The position numbers and the translations under genes were made by a program. A stretch of 61,352 nt of DNA, filler included, from Syncephalis fuscata S228 (taxonomy: Eukaryota; Fungi; Zoopagomycota), in the NCBI GenBank assembly GCA_025786725.1. It is 3 parts of 3 records of this genome, joined end to end, with 100 filler letters (N's around TTAATTAATTAA, not from the genome) between each part and the next. Parts side by side here need not be neighbours in the genome. Positions count along the whole stretch, not along the records: positions 1 to 16,522 come from JAHLTZ010000199.1; 2 more parts are not named here. The stretch is one strand, 5' to 3'. A model generated the notes under the pieces. The model was given only the letters and a program-made list of their open reading frames with translations, did not search any database and was not told the DNA's origin. Positions 1,704-16,522 of this stretch are shown piece after piece (position 1 is the first letter of the stretch; every line of letters starts with the position of its first letter).

Positions 1704-2758
1704 TATGATTTGGGTGTCAAATGACTAAATTTAATAACATTCGCGCAATTGAACTGCACATTCAATCTATTGAACATGGGGACAAGTGGTGAGTTTTATT
1801 TAATCATCACATCATCACACTTATTGCTTTTTTGGGGGACAAATGACTAATATTTAATAACGCCCAATCTATTGAACATGATGATGGGTGGTGAGTGACA
1901 TCAGTCATCAAATACTCATCAGCATAGATTCGTTATCCAGTATGCATATATTCAGTACACATATATATATTATTTACCTATATTATTCCTGTACTATCCC
2001 ACACCATTGTATCCCATTCTACGATAGACTAGACACACTTTATTGTTAATATACACCAACAAACTCCATTCAGTCTACTCATTGCGCTATATGCACTATA
2101 GCTTTAACTTTATTTTATATGCTTTTTCACCGTACATTTATTATTCTATATATCATTCTATAATCGCTTAGCCTTCCTCTATCCAAATCTGTTTATACTT
2201 TTGTTCTAGCTTTATTATTAATAAATGTCGACTAATGTCGGTCATCTGCTCATGCATATATGCTCAATAACTTTAACATTGCTAATCGTTACTGCGTATT
2301 GCATATTCTTTATATTATATGCCGTTTTATTGTCTAATGACTACTGGCTATTTATTGCAGCTGTTCTTTTTGTTTTAGCTCTATTATTAACAAAGTTGAC
2401 TAATTTTGCTCAGCTTGCTTAATAGACTATATATTTATTTATTTAAAACTCATAGCAAACAGAATGTATTCAATATGTCATATAATGGTAATGATATAGG
2501 TAGATAGTATATATATGCATATTGGACAATAAATCTACAATGATGAGTATTTGATGACTGATGTCACTCACCACCCATCATCATGTTCAATAGATTGGGC
2601 GTTATTAAATATTAGTCATTTGTCCCCCAAAAAAGCAATAAGTGTGATGATGTGATGATTAAATAAAACTCACCACTTGTCCCCATGTTCAATAGAGTGA
2701 ATGTGCAGTGCAATTGCGCGAATGTTATTAAATTTAGTCATTTGACCCCCAAATCATA
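1704..2758. mobile_element. MITE/foldback-like non-coding element with ~218-bp inverted repeats
   Basis: 1704-1921 is the near-perfect reverse complement of 2541-2758; related copy at ~46290-47135; no credible ORF. Confidence 0.75.
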
Positions 2759-2827
2759 TTGAATTATTAATAAATTGCTATAAATGTAATAAACTTTATT
2801 ATAAAATAAGTTTATTCAAAAATATTT

Positions 2828-5727
2828 TTAATTATTGGCTGTTTGAACAAACTGCATTTTTCGTTGTGCCACGACGTATAATTTGCTCTTAGCACATTTA
2901 GGAATAATAGGATAGTGGCTTCTAAGATATTCAAGACACGCCAAACGAAAGTTTATAAACTCCTCTTTAACATCATTCTGGCGTGCGAGTATTATGTATG
3001 CTGTTCTTGCACCGTGCTTGCTCCATCTCCCGCTTTTATGTGGATGGCTCGTGTCAATGGGATCTTCTTCAATAACAGCATGGGAGGGAAAATACCATTT
3101 CTCTGTCCAGGTCTCGTAATAGTTAGATGTTGTTAATTGAACGCTTTTTTTCTAAATGAATAAATAGCAAAGTTAATTATGTTCAATGAAGTATTAAACA
3201 AAACAGCTTAAATATTTACAATCAGCTTAAGGTGAAAATCCGCTTCGTTGGAGAATATTCGTCGTCCAAATCTATTAAAGCCTTCTTTATGTTCCTCCTT
3301 TACAAATTCATCCCACTTGTACATAGTAAACACTTCATCCATATAAAGGTCAACAAAAGGCGCCACATTTCCTGGCCCAAGACGATGAGTACAGAAATAT
3401 TGACAGGCTTTATCAAAATGATAGTGTTCAGTCTTAATATGCTTGTGATATTGGCAATCATCCACTTCTAAGTTGAATTTATAAACTGGGCCACTCGGCA
3501 GACTATTAATGATAGGCAATGATTCGGCTACATCAGTAAAAGTATCAGTATCAGAGATATTAGTTAAAGCTACAGTAATCCTGTCAGTTTCGAATTGGCT
3601 AAATTCAAAAATGGCTTTCAGTTTATCAACAGTATAAATGTCACTTGTTGACCAACGATTATCATCTGAATTAGACTCGATAAGGTTAGGAAGAAAACAA
3701 GCACTAGAATCTAGACGGCGATGGTTTTTTAACGTTTGGCCGACAGTGTCGCGCCACTGAGATCTGTCCATCGGGCGGTGGAATACTGCCGATAACATAT
3801 AGCTAAGCTGGGCAATAAAAGACAGGTGTTGATCTGAGTATCTGTTGCTGACCGAAAGATAATTTGTCTCTACCAGATACCACAAAGCGTTAATTCTATT
3901 GCCAGCATAGGACCAAAGCTGATCAGAATAATTCCAAACAACTTTTTCGTACACTTCAAGTCTATAAATAAAAATGTTAGCAAGTATAGTAATTTAAATT
4001 TATATATTACCCAAATTTGTCTTCTATGTTTTGAATGTCGGTATTAAACTCGGCCATAATTAACCGAAATTCAAAACGAACACCATAATTCTTCTTTTTC
4101 ATCAATTCGATATTTTTTTCGATTAATTTCTAAAAAGAAATTAATTACAAATCAATAATTAACCATAATTTTGCAAGCACTTACTATAAACTTAATGGCA
4201 CCTCTGCCTTTTTCAAGTACTTCATTTGGGCTGAAATCACGTCCATGACGATCAGAATTACCTGAAGCTCGTGTATAGAAGGCGTGTTTGCTCAGGCTGT
4301 AGACTTGCATATTTATCAGCCTCGAGCGAACAGTGTTGGTGTGTTTAAAACCACCAAAATTTTCAAAGTTGCAAAAACTATCATAACGACGAGTTGCTAT
4401 GAATATAGGTGAAAAAGTCAGTAAACAATAAAATATGATTTGGCAAAACGCATATATATATATATTCTAGCTTACCACTAGCCAAACGGATGGGATCATC
4501 ACTAAAAAAATGAAAAGCAATGTCATCATGGTCTTTAACAAAACCAGTTAACGGATAATTACATTCGATAGGTAAAATAGAAAATCCAACATCAATATAT
4601 GTTTTATCTAAAGGGATAATGTCCCAATTTAAGTTGAAAGTTTCTAATATTTTTCTAGGCGAATGCAGTGAAATAATACCTTCATCAGGGTACCTTTTTT
4701 TAAATCCTAGTCCCCAAACGATGAAAAAAAATGAATCAAAGTCCTTGGTATCAGGATTATTTAATATTATTCTACGCATTTGCGTAAGAAGTTCGTCTAC
4801 TGTATCGGAATGTAAACTAACGCTAGTGTTTACTTGAGTAGAATCGTATGATAAAGGAACAGACAAAACTTCACTGTCAGATAAATTATTAAGGGCAGGT
4901 ATAAGTACCGAATCCACAAAAAGCTTATGAGTAGCTTGATCAACAGCATATGTATGCTTTGTTTGATTCAAGGATCGCTTATAATACAAGGCGGGAAAAC
5001 ATATTACAACCTATAATTAAACAATAGTAAAAGCACCAATGATTAGCTTAAATAAAACGTATTTTTGTATACATTACCTGTAATTTACCGAATTTAGCAA
5101 AATTTAAATTTGGTATATGGAATATTTTAACGTCTTCACCTTTTGTTAATGTATGGTGATTATAAACAACGCCGGTATCAGACTTGTAAGAGAAATTGTA
5201 ATTGGCCCTGACCATTATATCGATGTCACAAGATGTGACAGGTATTGTTTTAATTTCATCGCAAACTATCGCAATTGAATCAATGTCTCGACGTATTTTA
5301 GTTTTGGGAGATTCATCAGAAAAGTTTTTAACACAATATTTGTTTTTTAAATCACCAGACACTCCTTGAATATGTGTACGGACATAATTAATATTTCTAA
5401 GATGATAAGGGGCATTGCTTTGCTTATGATCATGCTCTTGAGTGTATCCCTCAAACACGCTGATATTCATACTGCCTATAGTGAAGCTGAAGTTAGAGTC
5501 GTTGCTACAAATTGTACAATATACAGATTAAAATGATACTTACATGTTGAATCATCAGAGGTTATAGGCACGGGACTACTATTCAATTGTTTGACACGAG
5601 CACGCTTGAATAAAGAAGTAGTATTAGGCTGATTAGCTACACTAGAAGTAGATTGATCAGCTACACTAGAAGCGGGTTGCTCAACGCGAGCACGCTTGGC
5701 AAAATACGTAGTAATGAGAGAGGACAT
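2828..5727 (-). CDS. Uncharacterised 837-aa protein, 7 exons (5727-5544, 5475-5078, 5010-4476, 4396-4185, 4129-4011, 3961-3220, 3151-2828); probably mobile-element associated
   Basis: Six GT-AG introns join the ORF-track fragments into one open frame of 2514 nt; motifs RRDIDS, HIPN, CFPAL, YIDVG, MQVYSLSK, YGVRFEFR; embedded in the tandem macro-repeat. Confidence 0.85.
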
Positions 5728-6809
5728 TTGAGTATTTTTTGCTTAATGTAACCTGATGAGATACACTAAGTATGCAGATTACTTGGACAAGTGACAAAGC
5801 ATAAGTTAGAGAAAATAAATGTAAATTTGTATAAAAATTGATAATGTTTTTATTTGTGATAACTGGTGTGTTTATATATTGCTCTAGTTGATAGCTAGTA
5901 TCGGAGTAGAACAATATACAAGAAAATAAAATAATAAAAATAAAAATAAAAATAAAAAAAAAAATAAAAATAGTATTTGCCATGTGTGACTGACTAGTAA
6001 TTTAGTGGCCACGGAAATGGCCACTTTGTTACAATGTTACTGTAACAAAATGAAGGTGTATGCGCATGTTATTTTGCTAAAATAATAATAACATATTTCA
6101 ACACCACCATTCATTTAACAATAGTACTAGTATTTTATTTAAACGTCATTTGTATTGTGTTACGTTAATATTTAATAAGCTGTTAATAATTTGGTAATCA
6201 AATCATTACATTTAATAATACTTATTCCATTGAATATAATGCTAGGTGATGAATAACATCAATCATCAAGCCATTTAATTACAATCCGATTTATAATAAA
6301 ATGACTAATTTAATAATATTTGTCCCATTAAAACCTGCCATTCGTTCTATTGGATATAGAACTGGTGGTGAGTGGTACCAGCTGTCAAAATACTTATTAT
6401 CGTGGATTTATTATCCAGTACACATCTATATTTTATTTACATATATCACTATAATTGTATTGAAACACTACTATATAGCATCATATGATACACTAGACAC
6501 ATTTTGTTTATTATATGCGGCAACACACCTCACTTAATCCACTTATTACGCTGTACATTCATTATATTGTATGCCATTTATTGTATAATGCGTAAGAGCT
6601 ATGCAACACCATTGCTGTTTTGCTTCTAGATCTATTATTAAATAAGCGCGTGTTTATGTTTTAGGGCTTTTTATAACAAAAGCGTACCTTAATGTTAAAC
6701 CCTTTTGTGAGGGCACTTGAAATGGCCATAGTGGTACACTGTAACTTATCACTGTAAATTTGACGTTGTATACCATATGTGTTTTATTTTATAGCGTGTT
6801 GTTGTATAT

Positions 6810-7895
6810 TGTTATACAGTATAATGGCCACGCTCTATCGATTGGCGCTGTCCATTTTACGCTAGCTTTATAGTTGAAACTGGCCATTCCTTACACTCAG
6901 TTCGCTAATTACCATATTACGCAGTCACAATTGGACACACTAAAAAATTAATAGTAAATTAACGAAAAAATATACAGCAAATCCGATTGGTTCTGCGTAC
7001 TCAGACGACAATTCTGGTTATAATGGATCAATAAAATGCGATGTGTAAATATTTATTGTTTTTATTCAGAATTGTATATGCATATCATAGCAATATTGGT
7101 CAAATATTGGTAAAAATAATAAGTATACAAATAAATTTGTTTATTTATTGCTATAATTTGTTTATTATGATAGTGTGTTGATTGTTGTATGGTATACTGG
7201 CTACTGGGGGTCAATTCGGCCTATTCTAGTGCAGTCATTGCAGTCATTGCAGTAATTTCAGCTAATGACCAGTCAGTATGGTTCTTGCAGGTCATTACTC
7301 GTAGTTCAGCTACCGTATTTTGTTTGTTTTGTTTGTTTTACGTAGTTTACGCATCACTCGCTTCCCCTGCGTTGTTTTTACGTATTTATCTATGTAATGG
7401 TCACTTTACTCGTTGTATTTTACTCATATTGGCCTCAATCTGCACAGCACATTGCCACAGCACTACTGCTTGAGTGGCACCTTCCTAATATGAAGCCATT
7501 AGCGTGACCGTTTTTCGAACTCCAATACTAGGTCCCGTAGTGGTAGAACCCTTTTGTCTCTCTCTTCTCTTGTTGTTGTCTTGTTGTTGTTCTATTGTCG
7601 TTGTTCTTGTTGTTTTTTAACTCGCTATCGCTCGTATAGTTGTTCTGTAACTTCTTGTTCATTTTCCTTCATTTTTCATTTTTGTCTTATTTTTCTTATT
7701 TTAGCCCTATTTTATCAAGCCCTATCTTCATTAGCCCTAAATATTTGTCAAATAATTGTCAAAAATATTTTCAAAAAAAAATAAAAAAAAATCGTTGTCT
7801 GTTTTATTGTTGTTTCTTCATCTCCTGTTCATTCTGTTTCATTGTCCCCTACTCTCATGTCATTTGAGCTATTATTTCTCGAGTTATTCATTGTT
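6810..7895. repeat. Macro-repeat block C, copy 1 (second copy ~11035-12138)
   Basis: Near-identical ~1.1-kb direct repeat. Confidence 0.93.
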
Positions 7896-8880: not shown

Positions 8881-9440
8881 GTTAGTGTTAGTGTTGATGC
8901 CAATGTTGATGTTGTTACTATGTTGGTGCCGGTGCCGGTGCCGATGTTGATACTGGTACTGGTGCCATGCTGGTGTTGATGTTGATGCTGGTGCTGATGC
9001 TGGTGCTGGTGTTGGTGCTGGTGTCGATGTTGGTGCTGGTGCTGGTGCTGATGCTGGTGCTGATGCTGGTGTTGGTGCTGGTGCGGTGCTGGTGCTGGTG
9101 TTGGTGTTGGTGCTGATGCTGGTGTTGGTGCTGATGCCGGTGTTGGTGTTGGTGCTGATGCCGGTGCTGGTACTGGTGCTGGTGCTGATGTCGGTGTTGG
9201 TGCTGGTGCTGGTGCTGATGTGGTGCTGGTTGGTGCTGGTGCTGATGCTGGTGTTGGTGTTGGTGCTGATGCTGGTGTTGGTGCTGATGCTGGTGTTGGT
9301 GCTGGTGCTGGTGCTGGTGGATGTTGGTGCTGATGCCGGTGTTGGTGCTGGTGTTGGTGCTGTTGGTGCTGGTACTGGTGTTGGTGTGATGCCGGTGTTG
9401 GTACTGGTGCTGGTGTTGATGCTGGTGTTGGTACTGGTGT
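8881..9440. repeat. Degenerate hexamer microsatellite, copy 2
   Basis: Same GGTGYT-type period-6 repeat, with several phase slips. Confidence 0.97.
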
Positions 9441-10900
9441 CCGGCTATCTAAAATCTATAATAATCAATAAATGTTAGTGTTAGTATCCGGTATCTAAAA
9501 TTTAAAACAATATATGTATAAAGTTAGTATGTTGCAATGTTGTGTAGCCGGCCGCTAGCACACTAAAACAATTTGGTGATTTTTATTTATAATATAAAGC
9601 TGTAATTATCAATACAGGTTAGTAAGTTAGTAATCTAAATCTAAAGTCATCAATATAACATTAATTGTTATATTGCTTGGTAGCCGGCCGCTAACACACT
9701 AATCGCCATTGTCCTTGAACTTGATACTTGATGGCTTGTAAATCTAAAGCATTATATGTAGAGTTAGTGACTGATTTAAGTTAGTTACTTACCATTGCAT
9801 AATCAGTGCACCATAAAGAAGGACCGGTAAGTGGTTTGTTAAAGTGAAAAGGGAAAGAGAAGAAGAGCTGCCAATGCAACATCGTGCTAGCAGGTGTTTA
9901 CAGGCAGTGCATATAATGGCACTGCTGTATGGCCAGTACAGAGTGCTACTATATGCTACTACCGTAGCTAAACACACTATTGCTAGCACGGTGAGCAATG
10001 GAAGATATAGAGATAATGATGAGGAGAGGGTGAGAAAGGAACAGTATATGCTTGGTAGCATATATCCAGCATACACTGTTGCTAGTACGGTAAGTAATGG
10101 AAGGTTGGTGAAAAGGATAGGGAAGAAGGAGTAAAGTGAAAGAGGATGAGAATAGTGTATGCTTGGTAGCATATAGCCAGCATACACTGTTGCTAGTACG
10201 GTAAGTAATGGAACGTTGGTGAAAAGGATAGGGAAGAAGGAGTAAAGAGAAAGAGGATGAGAACAGTGTATGCTTGGTAGCATATATCCAGCATACACTG
10301 TTGCTAGTACGGTAAGTAATGGAAGGTTGGTGAAAAAAAGGATGAAGAGAAAGAGGAAAAGAAAGAGGAAGATAACGGTATATGTTTGGTAGCATATATT
10401 GCCACAGTTAGCATACTAGCAGCTGCCCACAAGGTAAAACGATACCGCTAGCACTGCTGTATGGCGCCATACAGCAGGGCGGTATGTAGTACCAAGACTA
10501 GGCATGCTTATACTAATAGACTAACAATGACATATAGCAAGCAAAGCATATACTGAACTTATGGAAACAAGTGCAAGTGGAAAGGTGGCTAGTGGATGAA
10601 TGCTGTCAAGTGTGGTGGATGAGAAAGAGGAACGTGTGACGCAAATCGTGTGCTATGCGATCAGCAGTCTGTTTTTATAGTGTGGGTGCAAGTGCTGATG
10701 TAATATGAATAAACAATTATTATGATTGGTGCCAATTGCCTTGTTTGACAGCACTCGCCCAGTCAAACTAAACGTTTATTTTATTGAATAATCATTTTCA
10801 TTAAATTATTAAATCATTAGATTATATTATGATTTGGGGGTCAAATGACTATATTGATAACATTCGCGTAGTTGAACTGCACATTCAATGTATTGAACAT
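9438..10900. repeat. Macro-repeat block B, copy 2, with one extra 111-bp minisatellite unit
   Basis: Aligns to 433-1770. Confidence 0.95.
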
Positions 10901-11034
10901 GATGGTGGATGGTAAGTGACGTCAATCATCAAATACTCATTGTTGTAAATGTATTGTCCAATATGCATATATCTTCCATTTACTTGCATTATTCACATTC
11001 TGTTTATGCTGTACACTTTCCATTCCATGCTCAT

Positions 11035-12138
11035 TTTATTAGACATCATTATACAGTATACTGGCCATGCTCTATCGATTGGCGTTGTCCATTTGACCAT
11101 AGCTTTATAGTTGAATTGGACATTCATTACACTCATTTCGCTAATTACCGTGTTTACGCAGTCACAATTGGACACACTAAAAAATTAATAGTAAATTAAC
11201 GAAAAAATATACAGCAAATCCGATTGGTTCTGCGTACTCAGACGACAATTCTGGTTATAATAAGCCAATAAAATGCGATGTGTAAATATTTATTGTTTTT
11301 ATTCAGAATTGTATATGCATATCATAGCAATATTGGTCAAATATTGGTAAAAATAATAAGTATACAAATAAATTTGTTTATTTATTGCTATAATTTGTTT
11401 ATTATGATAGTGTGTTGATTGGTGTATGGTATACTGGCTACTGGGGGTCAATTTGGCCTATTCTAGTGCAGTCATTGCAGTCATTGCAGTAATTTCAGCT
11501 AATGACCAGTCAGTATGGTTCTTGCAGGTCATTACTCGTAGTTCAGCTACCGTATTTTGTTTGTTTTGTTGTTTTACGTAGTTTACGCATCACTCGCTTC
11601 CCCTGCGTTGTTTTTACGTATTTATCTATGTAATGGTCACTTTACTCGTTGTATTTTACTCATATTGGCCTCAATCTGCACAGCACATTGCCACAGCACT
11701 ACTGCTTGAATGGCACCTTCCTAATATGAAGCCATTAGCGTGACCGTTTTTCGAACTCCAATACTAGGTCCCGTAGTGGTAGAACCCTTGTATTGTCTCT
11801 CTCTTCTCTTATTGTCGTTGTCATTGTCGTTGTTCTATTGTCGTTGTTCTTGTTGTTTTCTAACTCGCTATCGCTCGTATAGTTGTTCTCTAGCTTCTTG
11901 TTCATTTTCCTTCATTCTTCATTTTTGTCTTATTTTTCTTCTTTTAGCCCTATTTTATCAAGCCCTATCTTCATTAGCCCTAAATATTTGTCAAATAATT
12001 GTCAAAAATATTTTCAAAAAAAATAAAAAAAATCGTTGTCTGTTTTATTGTTGTTTCTTAATCTCCTGTTCATTCTGTTTCATTGTCACCTACCCTCATG
12101 TCATTTGTGCTAATATTTATCGAGTTATTCATTGTTAA
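11035..12138. repeat. Macro-repeat block C, copy 2
   Basis: Aligns to 6810-7895. Confidence 0.93.
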
Positions 12139-12139
12139 A

Positions 12140-13310
12140 GTTCATTTTTGTGGCTGTGTTCATTTTATCCATTATTCAACCATTTAGTCTATTATTCTAC
12201 TCTTTAGTCAATATTCACTTATTTAGTTTATTCTTCAATTATTTAGTCAATTATACCATTATTCAATTCTTTAGTCAATTATTCAATTATTTAGTCTATT
12301 ATTCAAATACTTAGTCAATTATACCTTTATTCAAATACTTAGTCAATTATACCTTTATTCAAATACTTAGTCAATTATTCCGTTGTTTAGTCCATTATTC
12401 AGTTAGTTAGTCTACTGGGCAATTATCGGCTAATTATTGCCATTTTTACTCAAATATTGCGGAAATTGGCCTACTAGTAAAAGTATGTCAGTATACATGC
12501 TATAACATTCAAATAGCTTGCAAAGCATTGCTTAGTTGATGCTATATCTTGCATATAAACATCTATGGCTTTGGTGCTAAATTGTGCTAAAATAAATATA
12601 TTAAAATGTGGTGGCCTAAACTACCTATGCTTCACACTATCTATACTTCAGTTGTTCAGTTAGTTAGTCTGTCTGTCATTTAATTTGTTAGTTGGTCAAT
12701 CTGTCGGTTAGTTAGTTTGTTAGTTGGTCATTTAATCAATTAGTTTTTGTCTGTCTGTCTGTCTATTATTCCATTATTTAGTTTGTCTGTCTATCTGTCA
12801 TTTAATGCTTACTCAATCCGTTAGTTGACCAGTCTGTCGATCTGTCAACCATTCTGTTATTTAGTCTATTGTTCAATCATTTATGCAATTGGTTGTCTAC
12901 TTCTTATATTGTTGATTATTAATGTCTACGAATTAGTCGCTTGTTAGTCTGTATATTGTTAGTCAATTAGTTGGGAAATTATGCCAACTAGTTAGTCAAT
13001 ATTTGGTCAATTAGTTGGTCAATTAGTTAGTCGTTTATTCAATTGGTTGATCATTTAGTTGTTCAGTTGGGCAATTAGTTGCTTATTTAGTTATTCAATT
13101 TGTCCGTCAATTAGTCAATCACTCATTTATTCAAATAATTACATATTTATTTGCTCCATTATTCAATTAGTATATGTCTGTCAATATATGTTCTATAACA
13201 ATAATTAATTCAAAGTATTGTTTAGTTAATGTTACATCTGTGTATATAAACGTACATAACTTTTATGGTAATGAGTGCTAAATTCTATTATTCAATATAT
13301 GAATGTCAAT
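12140..13310. repeat. Low-complexity TTAGTCAA/ATTCAA-rich degenerate repeat, present only in unit 2
   Basis: 28-bp tandem ATTCAAATACTTAGTCAATTATACCTTT at 12301, 12329 and partially 12357; absent between blocks C and D of unit 1. Confidence 0.8.
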
Positions 13311-13312
13311 CT

Positions 13313-14298
13313 ACCGATGCAATACATCATATATGTGAGGTAATAATTAATATAAATCATTGCATGTTATAAGCACTATAACATACTGACATGAATGAGT
13401 CGTGTATATTGCTTCCTACAATTAATATGATATACACACGATATCATACAATGATATATGTAAATACTGGATGTATGCATATTAAGTATATGCACACTGG
13501 ATATATGCTTACTGGATAATAATCTACATTAATGTCTATTTTCTATTTTATTTATTCATCATCCATTATCATGTTCAGTACATTAAATGCTTTTAAATAT
13601 TGCCATTTGATCTGCTGATCATACTATAAGCATCATTAAATTGTTTAATCATTAGTTAGTATGTGCAACACATACTAATTGTATAATATTTATTGTCACA
13701 ATTCACTTGATTAAATACAATAAACTATATTGTATTGATTTTTTGATTGAGATGCAAAAGTATAAAGCTTTGCATCTACTTATTTAGTAGCTATGTGCTT
13801 TTATTTAATGCTTTGCTTGGATATTGTTTGGTAATATCAATTACTAATCACTTGGATATTACCAATAAATAATATATTATTAATTGATCCAATATCTTTT
13901 TTAATCTTGCTGTTAATTGATAGCAATAGTATCAATTAGTCTTGATGATGTCACATCAAGTACTTGTGAAGTTGCTATTGTTGCTATTGTTGCTATTGTT
14001 GTGATGGTATACCACCGTTTATTGGTGGCGTATACCACCACATACAAATTATGATGGATACTGCTACAACTGCTGTATCACATTACTTACTTATTTAAAA
14101 TCGCGATTAGTGTGTTAGCGGCCGGCTACCTACAATTCTAAAATAATAAATACAATGTTAGTACGTTAGTAGACAATTGTCCTGAATTGTTATTGCATAT
14201 TTGGTTTTAGTGTGCTAGCGGCCGGCTATGTATAATAATAATACTTACGCTAGGTGTCCATGGCCGGCTACCTACGAATCTAAAATAATAAATACAAT
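13313..14298. repeat. Macro-repeat block D, copy 2
   Basis: Aligns to 7930-8880. Confidence 0.93.
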
Positions 14299-15186
14299 GT
14301 TAGTGTTAGTTTTTATGCCAATGTTAATATTGTTACTGGTGTTGGTGCTGGTACTGGTGTTGGTGTTGATACTGGTGCTGGTACTGGTACTGATGTTGGT
14401 GTTGATGCCGGCGCTGATGCTGATGTTGGTGCTGATGACGGTGCTGGTGCTGGTGCCGATGTTGGTGCTGATGCTGGTGTTGGTACTGGTGTTGATGCTG
14501 GTGTTGGTACTGGTGCTGGTGCTGGTGCCGATATTAGTGTTGGTGCTGGTGCCGATGTTGGTGCCGATGCTGGTGTTGTTGTTGGTACTGGTGCTGGTGC
14601 CGATGTTAGTGTTGGTGCTGGTGCCGATGTTGGTGCCGGTGCTGATGTTGGTGTTGGTGCCGGTGCCGGTGCTGGTATTGATGTTGGTGTTGGTACTGGT
14701 GTTGATGCTGGTACTGGTGTTGGTGTTGGTACTGGTATTGGTGCTGATGCCGGTGCTGGTACTAGTATTGGTGTTGATGCCGATGTTGGTGCTGGTGCTG
14801 GTGCTGGTACTGGTGTTGGTGCCGGTGCCGGTGCTGGTATTGATGTTGGTGTTGGTACTGGTGTTGGTGCCGGTGCCGGTGTTGGTGTTGGTACTGGTAT
14901 TGGTGCTGATGCCGGTGCTGGTACTAGTATTGGTGTTGATGCCGATGTTGGTGCTGGTGCTGGTACTGGTGTTGGTGCCGGTGCCGGTGCTGGTATTGAT
15001 GTTGGTGTTGGTACTGGTGCTGGTGCTGGTATTGATGTTGATGTTGGTGCTGGTGCTGGTGTTGGTACTGGTGTTGGTGCCGGTGTCGATGTTGGTACTG
15101 ATGTTGGTGCTGGTGCTGATGTTGATGTTGGAGTTGGTGCCGATGCTGTTACTGGAGTTGGTGCTGATGTTGGTATTGGTGTGTCG
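14299..15186. repeat. Degenerate hexamer microsatellite, copy 3 (longest)
   Basis: Period-6 repeat with internal higher-order duplications. Confidence 0.97.
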
Positions 15187-15189
15187 GTA

Positions 15190-16522
15190 TTCAGCTATCT
15201 AAATCTATAATAATCAATAAATGTTAGTGTTAGTGTCCGGTATCTAAAATTTAAAACAATATATGTATAAAGTTAGTATGTTGCAATGTTGTGTAGCCGG
15301 CCGCTAGCACACTAAAACAATTTGGTGATTTTTATTTATGATATAAATTTGTAATTATCAATACAGGTTAGTAAGTTAGTAATCTAAATCTAAAGTCATC
15401 AATATAGCATTAATTGTTATATTGTTTGGTAGCCGGCCGCTAACACACTAATCGCCATTGTCCTTGAACTTGATACTTGATGGCTTGTAAATCTAAAGCA
15501 TTATATGCAGAGTTAGTGACTGATTTAAGTTAGTTACTTACCATTGCATAATCAGTGCACCATAAAGAAGGACCGGTAAGTGGTTTGTTAAAGTGAAAAG
15601 GGAAAGAGAAGAAGAGCTGCCAATGCAACATCGTGCTAGCAGGTGTTTACAGGCAGTGCATATAATGGCACTGCTGTATGGCCAGTACAGAGTGCCACCA
15701 TATGCTACTACCATAGCTAAACACACTATTGCTAGCACGGTGAGCAATGGAAGATATAGAGATAATGATGAGGAGAGTGTGAGAAAGGAACAGTATATGC
15801 TTGGTAGCATATATCCAGCATACACTGTTGCTAGTACGGTAAGTAATGGAAGGTTGGTGAAAAGGATGGGGAAGAAGGAGAGATGAGAAAGAGGATAAGA
15901 ACAGTGTATGCTTGGTAGCATATAGCCAGCATACACTGTTGCTAGTACGGTAAGTAATGGCACGTTAGAAAAAAGAAGGATGAAGAAAAGAATGAAGAAG
16001 AAAAGAGAAAGAATGAGGAAGAGAAAGAGAAAGAGAAAGAGAACGTTATATGTTTGGTAGCATATATCCATCATAGCTAGCATACTAGCAGCTGCTCACA
16101 AGGCAAAACGACACCGCTAGCACTGCTGTATGGCGCCATACAGCAGGGCGGTATGTAGTACCAAGACTAGGCATGCTTATACTAATAGACTAGCAATGAC
16201 ATATAGCAAGCAAAGCATATACCGGACTTATGGAAACAAGTGCAAGTGGGAACGTGGCTAGTGGATAAATGCTGTCAAGTGTGGTGGATGAGAAAGAGGA
16301 ACGTGTGACGCAAATCGTGTGCTATGCGATCGGCAGTCTGTTTTTATAGTGTGGGTGCAAGTGCTGATGTAATATGAATAAACAATTATTATGATTGGTA
16401 CCAATTGACTTGTTTGACAGCACTCGCCCAGTCAAACTAAACGTTTATTTTATTGAATAATCATTTTCATTAAATTATCAAATCATTAAATTATATTATG
16501 ATTTGGGTGTCAAATGACTATA
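15190..16522. repeat. Macro-repeat block B, copy 3, cut by the gap
   Basis: Aligns to 433-1730. Confidence 0.95.

Follow-up and report, generated by a model that had tools for sequence, protein, structure and literature searches.

Syncephalis fuscata is a mycoparasite of the Zoopagomycota whose genome assembly (strain S228, GCA_025786725.1) comprises 29.4 Mb in 371 contigs. The stretch considered here, referred to as the window, is 61,352 nucleotides (nt) of that assembly, consisting of three parts joined end to end with filler between them. On its minus strand, from 5727 down to 2828, lies a gene of seven exons that join in one frame (Table 1). As checked for frame and length with a local script, the coding sequence is 2514 nt, which gives 837 codons and a stop without any internal stops. 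The six introns are short (68, 67, 79, 55, 49, and 68 nt from 5' to 3'), all run from GT to AG, and several contain a CTAAC-like branch site of the fungal type. A previous sequence-only reading of the window had postulated this hidden 837-residue protein, pieced together from four fragments on the open reading frame (ORF) track and three unlisted exons. The gene structure bears this out, in that four of the exons correspond to listed ORFs and the other three are short, unlisted pieces. The intact seven-exon frame and the motifs it carries are far beyond what chance would produce.

How well are the splice sites supported? The evidence is 3-fold. (i) Contigs of run X5, labeled as RNA by guess, omit exactly 3152-3219, 3962-4010, and 5476-5543 (CT..AC on the plus strand), joining 5544 to 5475, 4011 to 3961, and 3220 to 3151. 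Contigs of the DNA run X1, from the same organism, are colinear and retain the introns. (ii) Introns 2 to 5 have identical junctions in the public NCBI model of a paralogue on contig C35 (KAI9595941.1, here P0001). (iii) A profile made from four distant relatives matches exons 3, 6, and 7 in the S. fuscata genome with E values of 1e-17, 5e-10, and 3e-15. The 837-residue gene is intact, spliced, and transcribed, the last with the guessed label of X5 in mind. The public model itself, located at C35 ~659.3-663 kb and named "hypothetical protein, partial," has 555 amino acids (aa) and is without exons 1 and 2. It also runs through intron 6 to a stop after "VNI," thereby losing the conserved 107-residue C terminus.

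Table 1. The gene, its conserved residues, and the surrounding repeats (window coordinates; residues numbered on the 837-aa protein)
Feature	Window position	Strand	Residues	Details
Exon 1	5544..5727	-	1-61 + base 1 of codon 62	ATG at 5727; two KRARV(E/K)Q basic repeats, like a nuclear localization signal (NLS) in appearance
Direct repeat in exon 1	5587-5623 / 5677-5713
Exon 2	5078..5475	-	62-194	Beta-rich; DIDS motif at aa 124-127
Exon 3	4476..5010	-	195-372	DHxLFV, MRRI, FFFxxxxxGxK298, YIDVG strand, TGF, in this order
Exon 4	4185..4396	-	373-443	R376-x-D378, GGFK390, MQVY405SLSK409, then R415
Exon 5	4011..4129	-	444-482	NYGVR461-F-E463-F-R465-L at codons 4078-4064
Exon 6	3220..3961	-	483-730	Helical; HRPMD motif at aa 544-548
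Exon 7	2828..3151	-	731-837 + stop	Conserved C terminus GARxAY ... IPKxAKxKxY; profile match E 2.7e-15
K298			298	17/17
D334	4593-4591	-	334	In YIDVG, exon 3; D in 15/17, E and H in the other two
Second residue after D334				Always A or G
R376			376	12/13
D378			378	12/13
K390			390	12/13
Y405	4301-4299	-	405	Exon 4; 13/13
K409			409	13/13
R415			415	14/16
YGVRxEFR				6 of the 7-8 sequences reaching that region
HRPxD				4/5 full-length proteins; HRSxD in the fifth
Repeat unit 1	1-9011			Gene-bearing
Repeat unit 2	9012-14320			Without ~4.86 kb (1951-6812)
Gene-bearing segment	1951..6812	.		Gene and upstream region; in unit 1, not in unit 2 (10972 continues at 11049); borders approximate, mosaic
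Hairpin palindrome pair	6005..6024	+		GTGGCCAC-GGAAA-TGGCCAC, perfect; ~280 nt upstream of the ATG; candidate cis element
R repeat	1657-1968	+
R repeat	2494-2809	-
R repeat	6197-6400	+		Diverged
R repeat	10780-10972	+
Degenerate (TGGTGC)n tracts	2-432, 8924-9439, 14322-15182			One per repeat unit
110-111 bp tandem repeats	1025-1278, 10039-10399, 15788-15987			2-3 copies after each hexamer tract
840-bp piece	6698-7557

The assembly contains five near-identical copies of the gene and no diverged paralogues. Three are intact, namely, the window copy (contig C111) and those on C35 and C247. In the C215 copy, single bases are deleted at four places, equivalent to window positions 4055, 3457, 3314, and 2904. 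The C266 copy has one such deletion (3707) and is truncated where its contig stops. The window and C35 copies differ by 11 synonymous and 9 nonsynonymous codon changes, a rough dN/dS of ~0.25 based on small counts.

All five copies share a larger mosaic repeat context, and the gene is the sole substantial gene of its low-copy repeat unit. The second unit in the window, which lacks the gene-bearing segment, has 1.2 kb that is extra relative to the first. At least 50 places across the genome are related to one flanking piece (window 11049-12138); the gene is found in only five. The arrays take up the final 6 to 19 kb of the large contigs C35, C168, and C325, and the remaining gene-bearing contigs, of 5 to 16 kb, consist of repeats throughout. 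The setting is subtelomere-like, with mosaic arrays at contig ends that are putative chromosome ends, in an assembly that has no TTAGGG arrays: four successive TTAGGG units occur 0 times in the whole 29.4 Mb, the telomeres being either unassembled or built from a different repeat in this species. Yeast Y' elements and the telomere-linked RecQ helicase (TLH) genes are known examples of near-identical copies of a long gene in chromosome-end arrays with simple-repeat tracts between units. The S. fuscata gene is like them in each of these respects; unlike them, it encodes neither a helicase nor any other Pfam domain that Pfam scans detect.

What other organisms carry this gene? Searches were made with single exons, or with database proteins that those searches returned, rather than with the joined 837-aa protein. 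An HMMER search of 1.84 billion representative proteins with exon 3 as the query yielded 15: one S. fuscata paralogue, four full-length relatives with ~25% identity, and otherwise ORF-sized fragments. Of the full-length relatives, P0008 (1098 aa) is labeled as Albugo candida, being from either this oomycete or a contaminant, and lies on a 7.3-kb contig of GCA_040437565.1 with 30-39% G+C and no other informative genes. The other three, P0007, P0023, and P0024, are from public-run assemblies. Homology spans the protein from the DIDS motif of exon 2, which three relatives also have, to the C-terminal IPKxAKxKxY. Duplicated basic motifs resembling the two S. fuscata repeats occur at the N termini of the relatives too, and a Cys/His-rich stretch in exon 6 is found in S. 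fuscata only. Pfam, NCBIfam, and PHROGs models match no exon and no relative, pattern scans added no members from JGI metagenomes or IMG/VR, and a word search with exon 6 was blank. Sequence and profile searches of the PDB gave noise only (mL40, a senescence-associated protein, and the RRM of PPIE, with E of 0.5-2). The feature search of the ESM Atlas recognized exon 6 poorly and offered a caspase-like lead for exon 3 (139/256 features shared), which was dropped, as nothing else supported it. The family, eukaryotic and unannotated, is very rare and has a patchy distribution.

In the alignments, the motifs singled out by the sequence-only reading are the conserved polar residues of this family, and the D, Y, K, R, and E residues for which it proposed a conservation check are retained in the homologues at the rates listed in Table 1. 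The distances between them are also as described: MQVYSLSK, with Y405 and K409, follows 71 aa after D334 of YIDVG, and NYGVRFEFRL, with R461, E463, and R465, a further 56 aa on. Two AlphaFold runs with shallow alignments, one on P0001 (equivalent to window aa 179-730 at 99% identity) and one on residues 310-760 of P0008, gave models that are usable (pLDDT about 65-90) only across the equivalent of window aa ~190-510. The predicted order is the YIDVG strand and a helix; the RxD, GGFK, and QxY strands as successive hairpins; a long helix; the RxExR strand; and a helix. Going by these models, aa ~330-490 would form a beta-alpha-beta(3-4)-alpha-beta module. The most conserved polar residues of the family (D334, R376, D378, K390, Y405, K409, R461, E463, and R465) probably share one face of the sheet in this module. 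The module has weak fold matches to Bet v 1/START proteins, AHSA1, polyketide cyclases, the C-terminal domain of phosphoglucomutase, the AdoMetDC-like N-domain, and Rep_trans, all of which we take to belong to the TBP-like, beta-alpha-beta4-alpha class of SCOP. No match with E < 0.05 or TM-score (TM) > 0.3 came from the Atlas structure search or from Foldseek run on the PDB and on BFVD.

What, then, might the conserved residues do? The sequence-only reading compared them to those of Rep_trans, nicking enzymes whose hallmark is site-specific cleavage at an origin hairpin with a covalent 5'-phosphotyrosine link. One mark of Rep_trans membership is a crescent-shaped, TBP-like sheet made of two five-strand modules, and the TBP-like sheet is described in PMC4797284 and PMC13107129. 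The key residues are D46 on strand 1; R140-x-D142-x-A144-x-D146 on strand 6; R189-x-Y191-x-K193 on strand 10, followed by a helix; and R212-x-E214 on strand 11, with D46, D142, and E214 binding the metal (Carr et al.). The family was reported as bacteria-only, and Rep_trans-like enzymes were extended to archaea in 2026 through structure (PMC13107129).

Several features of the S. fuscata family recall these enzymes. Its motifs come in the same order, with DIDS, xLDLAF or YIDVGF, QxYxxxK, a helix, and RxExR, and the residues that might serve as the three carboxylates, D126 of DIDS (4/4), D334, and E463, follow the Rep_trans order. As in RepC and RepD of the pT181 type, RepDE (4CWC/4CWE), and RepSTK1 (4CIJ), all of PF02486, adjacent strands of the alpha+beta sheet are predicted to carry the conserved polar residues. 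The RxE strand reads RFEFRL here and RFEIRL in two Rep_trans proteins of the integrative and conjugative element (ICE) type. The best local hhalign alignment against pT181-type Reps pairs LYLDLAF with RLDLAFDF; against a diverse set of 14 Rep_trans proteins, gathered from loci in plasmids and genomes, it matches YGVRFEFR to WRVEIELK. In a motif scan with strand profiles of Rep_trans, the site expected for the RxE profile came first of ~440, and that for the RLDLAFDF profile came third.

Other results weigh against a nicking enzyme of this kind. The hhalign comparisons with RepC, 11 pT181-type Reps, and the 14 diverse proteins were not significant, with probabilities of 0.07-0.9% and E of 0.06-0.7, and the tyrosine-strand profile did not rank the Y405 site. 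PF02486 matched none of the exons, P0001, P0007, or P0008 at E<=1 and nothing in the whole genome at E<=10, while a control genome was positive; five bacterial genomes carrying Rep_trans likewise gave no match to the family profile at E<=10. At the residue level, the position of R140 is occupied by Y, F, or W and that of D146 is variable, with just the D and the small A or G preserved, and the Tyr-Lys spacing of QxYxxxK differs from that of RxYxK. Structural matches to Rep_trans are recurrent, but they are weak and tie with those to Bet v 1-like proteins, and Rep_trans is absent from the top 50 matches of the fungus's own model. Element borders, terminal inverted repeats, and target duplications specific to the gene-bearing unit were looked for and none was found; nor were terminal repeats on the contigs of the relatives. 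Unlike Rep_trans proteins, of about 314 aa, the S. fuscata protein has 837; it contains long inserts, and its C-terminal half is large and helical. Its gene is eukaryotic, with six introns and no plasmid or phage context. Of the Rep_trans-like reading, then, the motif order holds up and weak fold matches recur, while a match by hidden Markov model (HMM) or profile and counterparts of R140 and D146 do not. Likewise, the profile-profile search that had been proposed put its best alignments on the LDLAF and RxE motifs but at the negligible probabilities given above. Membership of Rep_trans is not supported, and the likeness is suggestive and unproven.

Tentatively, the protein may be a metal-dependent tyrosine nicking-joining enzyme that acts like Rep_trans on its own repeat unit. 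It would enter the nucleus through its N-terminal basic repeats. The conserved face of the sheet would then cleave and rejoin nucleic acid strands in a metal-dependent manner with Tyr405 as the nucleophile, working in the style of Rep_trans, whose TBP-like sheet carries D/D/E metal ligands and the tyrosine strand RxYxK. By acting on its own unit, the enzyme could seed copying or recombination, through which the unit would spread and homogenize. The perfect hairpin upstream of the ATG is at most a candidate cis element; it falls within the gene-bearing segment, occurs once in the window, and has a DNA fold of -9.5 kcal/mol (z of -3.8 versus shuffles). Words containing TGGCCA recur near the hairpin, at about 6722, 6823, and 6878. 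Slightly more speculative is the wider proposal that this is the first eukaryotic relative, or a convergent analogue, of the TBP-fold tyrosine nickases Rep_trans and Rep-Arvir. It would be encoded in a repeat unit at the chromosome ends of a fungus of the Zoopagales, have kin in a handful of further eukaryotic samples, and amplify its own unit by nicking it.

Is there precedent for such an enzyme? Rep-Arvir (DUF7845), from archaeal viruses and plasmids, is a Rep_trans-like enzyme that sequence searches do not see. Its tyrosine motif is divergent, and acidic residues occupy the positions of the metal ligands (PMC13107129). Its TM to RepDE is about 0.5, and it has been tested by mutagenesis, whereas the S. 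fuscata match is far weaker and known from sequence and models. The proposed role, a tyrosine nicking enzyme of a eukaryotic repeat, is also that of the Helitron RepHel and other HUH endonucleases. Unlike these, the S. fuscata family has no conserved His-hydrophobic-His in its alignment, no helicase domain, and a different predicted fold. If the proposal is true, rolling-circle nicking enzymes would have a second class present in all three domains, and the gene would signal a eukaryotic repeat or mobile element of a new type. Without the Rep_trans link, there is still an unannotated, expressed, and conserved family with an active site-like set of residues in the chromosome-end repeats of an early-diverging fungus.

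Does the protein cut nucleic acid at all? It could instead be a lineage-restricted nuclear protein of chromosome-end repeats, for example, one that binds DNA or chromatin or has a structural role, whose charged residues bind and whose copy number follows subtelomere-like recombination. This explanation is about as probable as the nicking-joining enzyme. The mosaic arrays at contig ends are in line with it, as are the many related places with only five genes, the lack of detectable borders, inverted repeats, or target duplications, and the failure to match any known catalytic family. TBP-like folds are moreover mostly binding modules: those of Bet v 1, START, AHSA1, and others bind ligands in hydrophobic cavities. 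Unlike in these, the strands of the predicted S. fuscata sheet bear conserved Asp, Arg, Lys, Tyr, and Glu, and in a pure binder, invariant Tyr, Lys, Arg, and acidic residues located on strands would be unusual. The occurrence of the family in very distant hosts and on short contigs, as for mobile genes, also fits a noncutting protein poorly.

An RNase H-like (DDE/DED) transposase or nuclease is unlikely. Here, the three hairpin strands, the long helix, and the fourth strand would be beta1-3, alpha1, and beta4, an order that fits both models, and the carboxylates would be D378 (beta1), E463 (beta4), and D548 of HRPMD, all of which are conserved. The gene is multicopy, its product has NLS-like repeats, and one weak Foldseek match is to RNase H2. 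However, RNase H-like folds are abundant in the PDB and yet none is among the best structural matches, and the fifth strand is not predicted. The unit also lacks bounding repeats of its own, with no terminal inverted repeats or target-site duplications detected, and the R repeats that flank the gene are a separate, genome-wide family.

Less likely again is a special case of the nicking-joining proposal, in which the protein derives by actual descent from bacterial Rep_trans (PF02486), having arrived through horizontal transfer and since lost any recognizable sequence similarity. It draws on the same evidence as that proposal, and Rep-Arvir provides an example of relatives recognizable by structure only (PMC13107129). 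Against such descent stand the absence of two strictly conserved residues, the failed HMM and profile tests, the six introns, the lack of bacterial intermediates, and the blank result for the family profile in the five Rep_trans-bearing genomes. Finally, that this is a decaying or functionless frame in repeat DNA is very unlikely, since the frameshifting deletions in 2/5 copies are set against three copies intact over 2514 nt, spliced transcripts in X5, an excess of synonymous changes, and ~25%-identity relatives conserved over the whole length.

The repeats around the gene have features of their own. The R repeat is interspersed, ~300 bp long, and composed of 102- to 122-bp subrepeats with the core TTTGGGGG(T/A)CAAATGACTAA. 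The copies at 1657-1968 and 2494-2809 form an inverted pair of 91-93% identity with 525 nt between them. The R repeats on either side of the gene resembled terminal inverted repeats but were rejected as such, as the family is genome-wide, with at least 1208 first-look candidates. Part of the R repeat reaches a word depth of ~2500 in the RNA-like run X5, compared to 12 for the gene. The degenerate (TGGTGC)n tracts produce long false "LVLVLV" ORFs. A telomeric nature for this hexamer was dropped, since genome-wide it is confined to the interior of these units and absent from contig tips. The 110-111 bp tandem repeats give rise to overlapping false ORFs on both strands. Lastly, the 840-bp piece is present in ~3 tandem copies beside the C35 gene copy (C35 655.3-659 kb) and twice each on C266 and C247.
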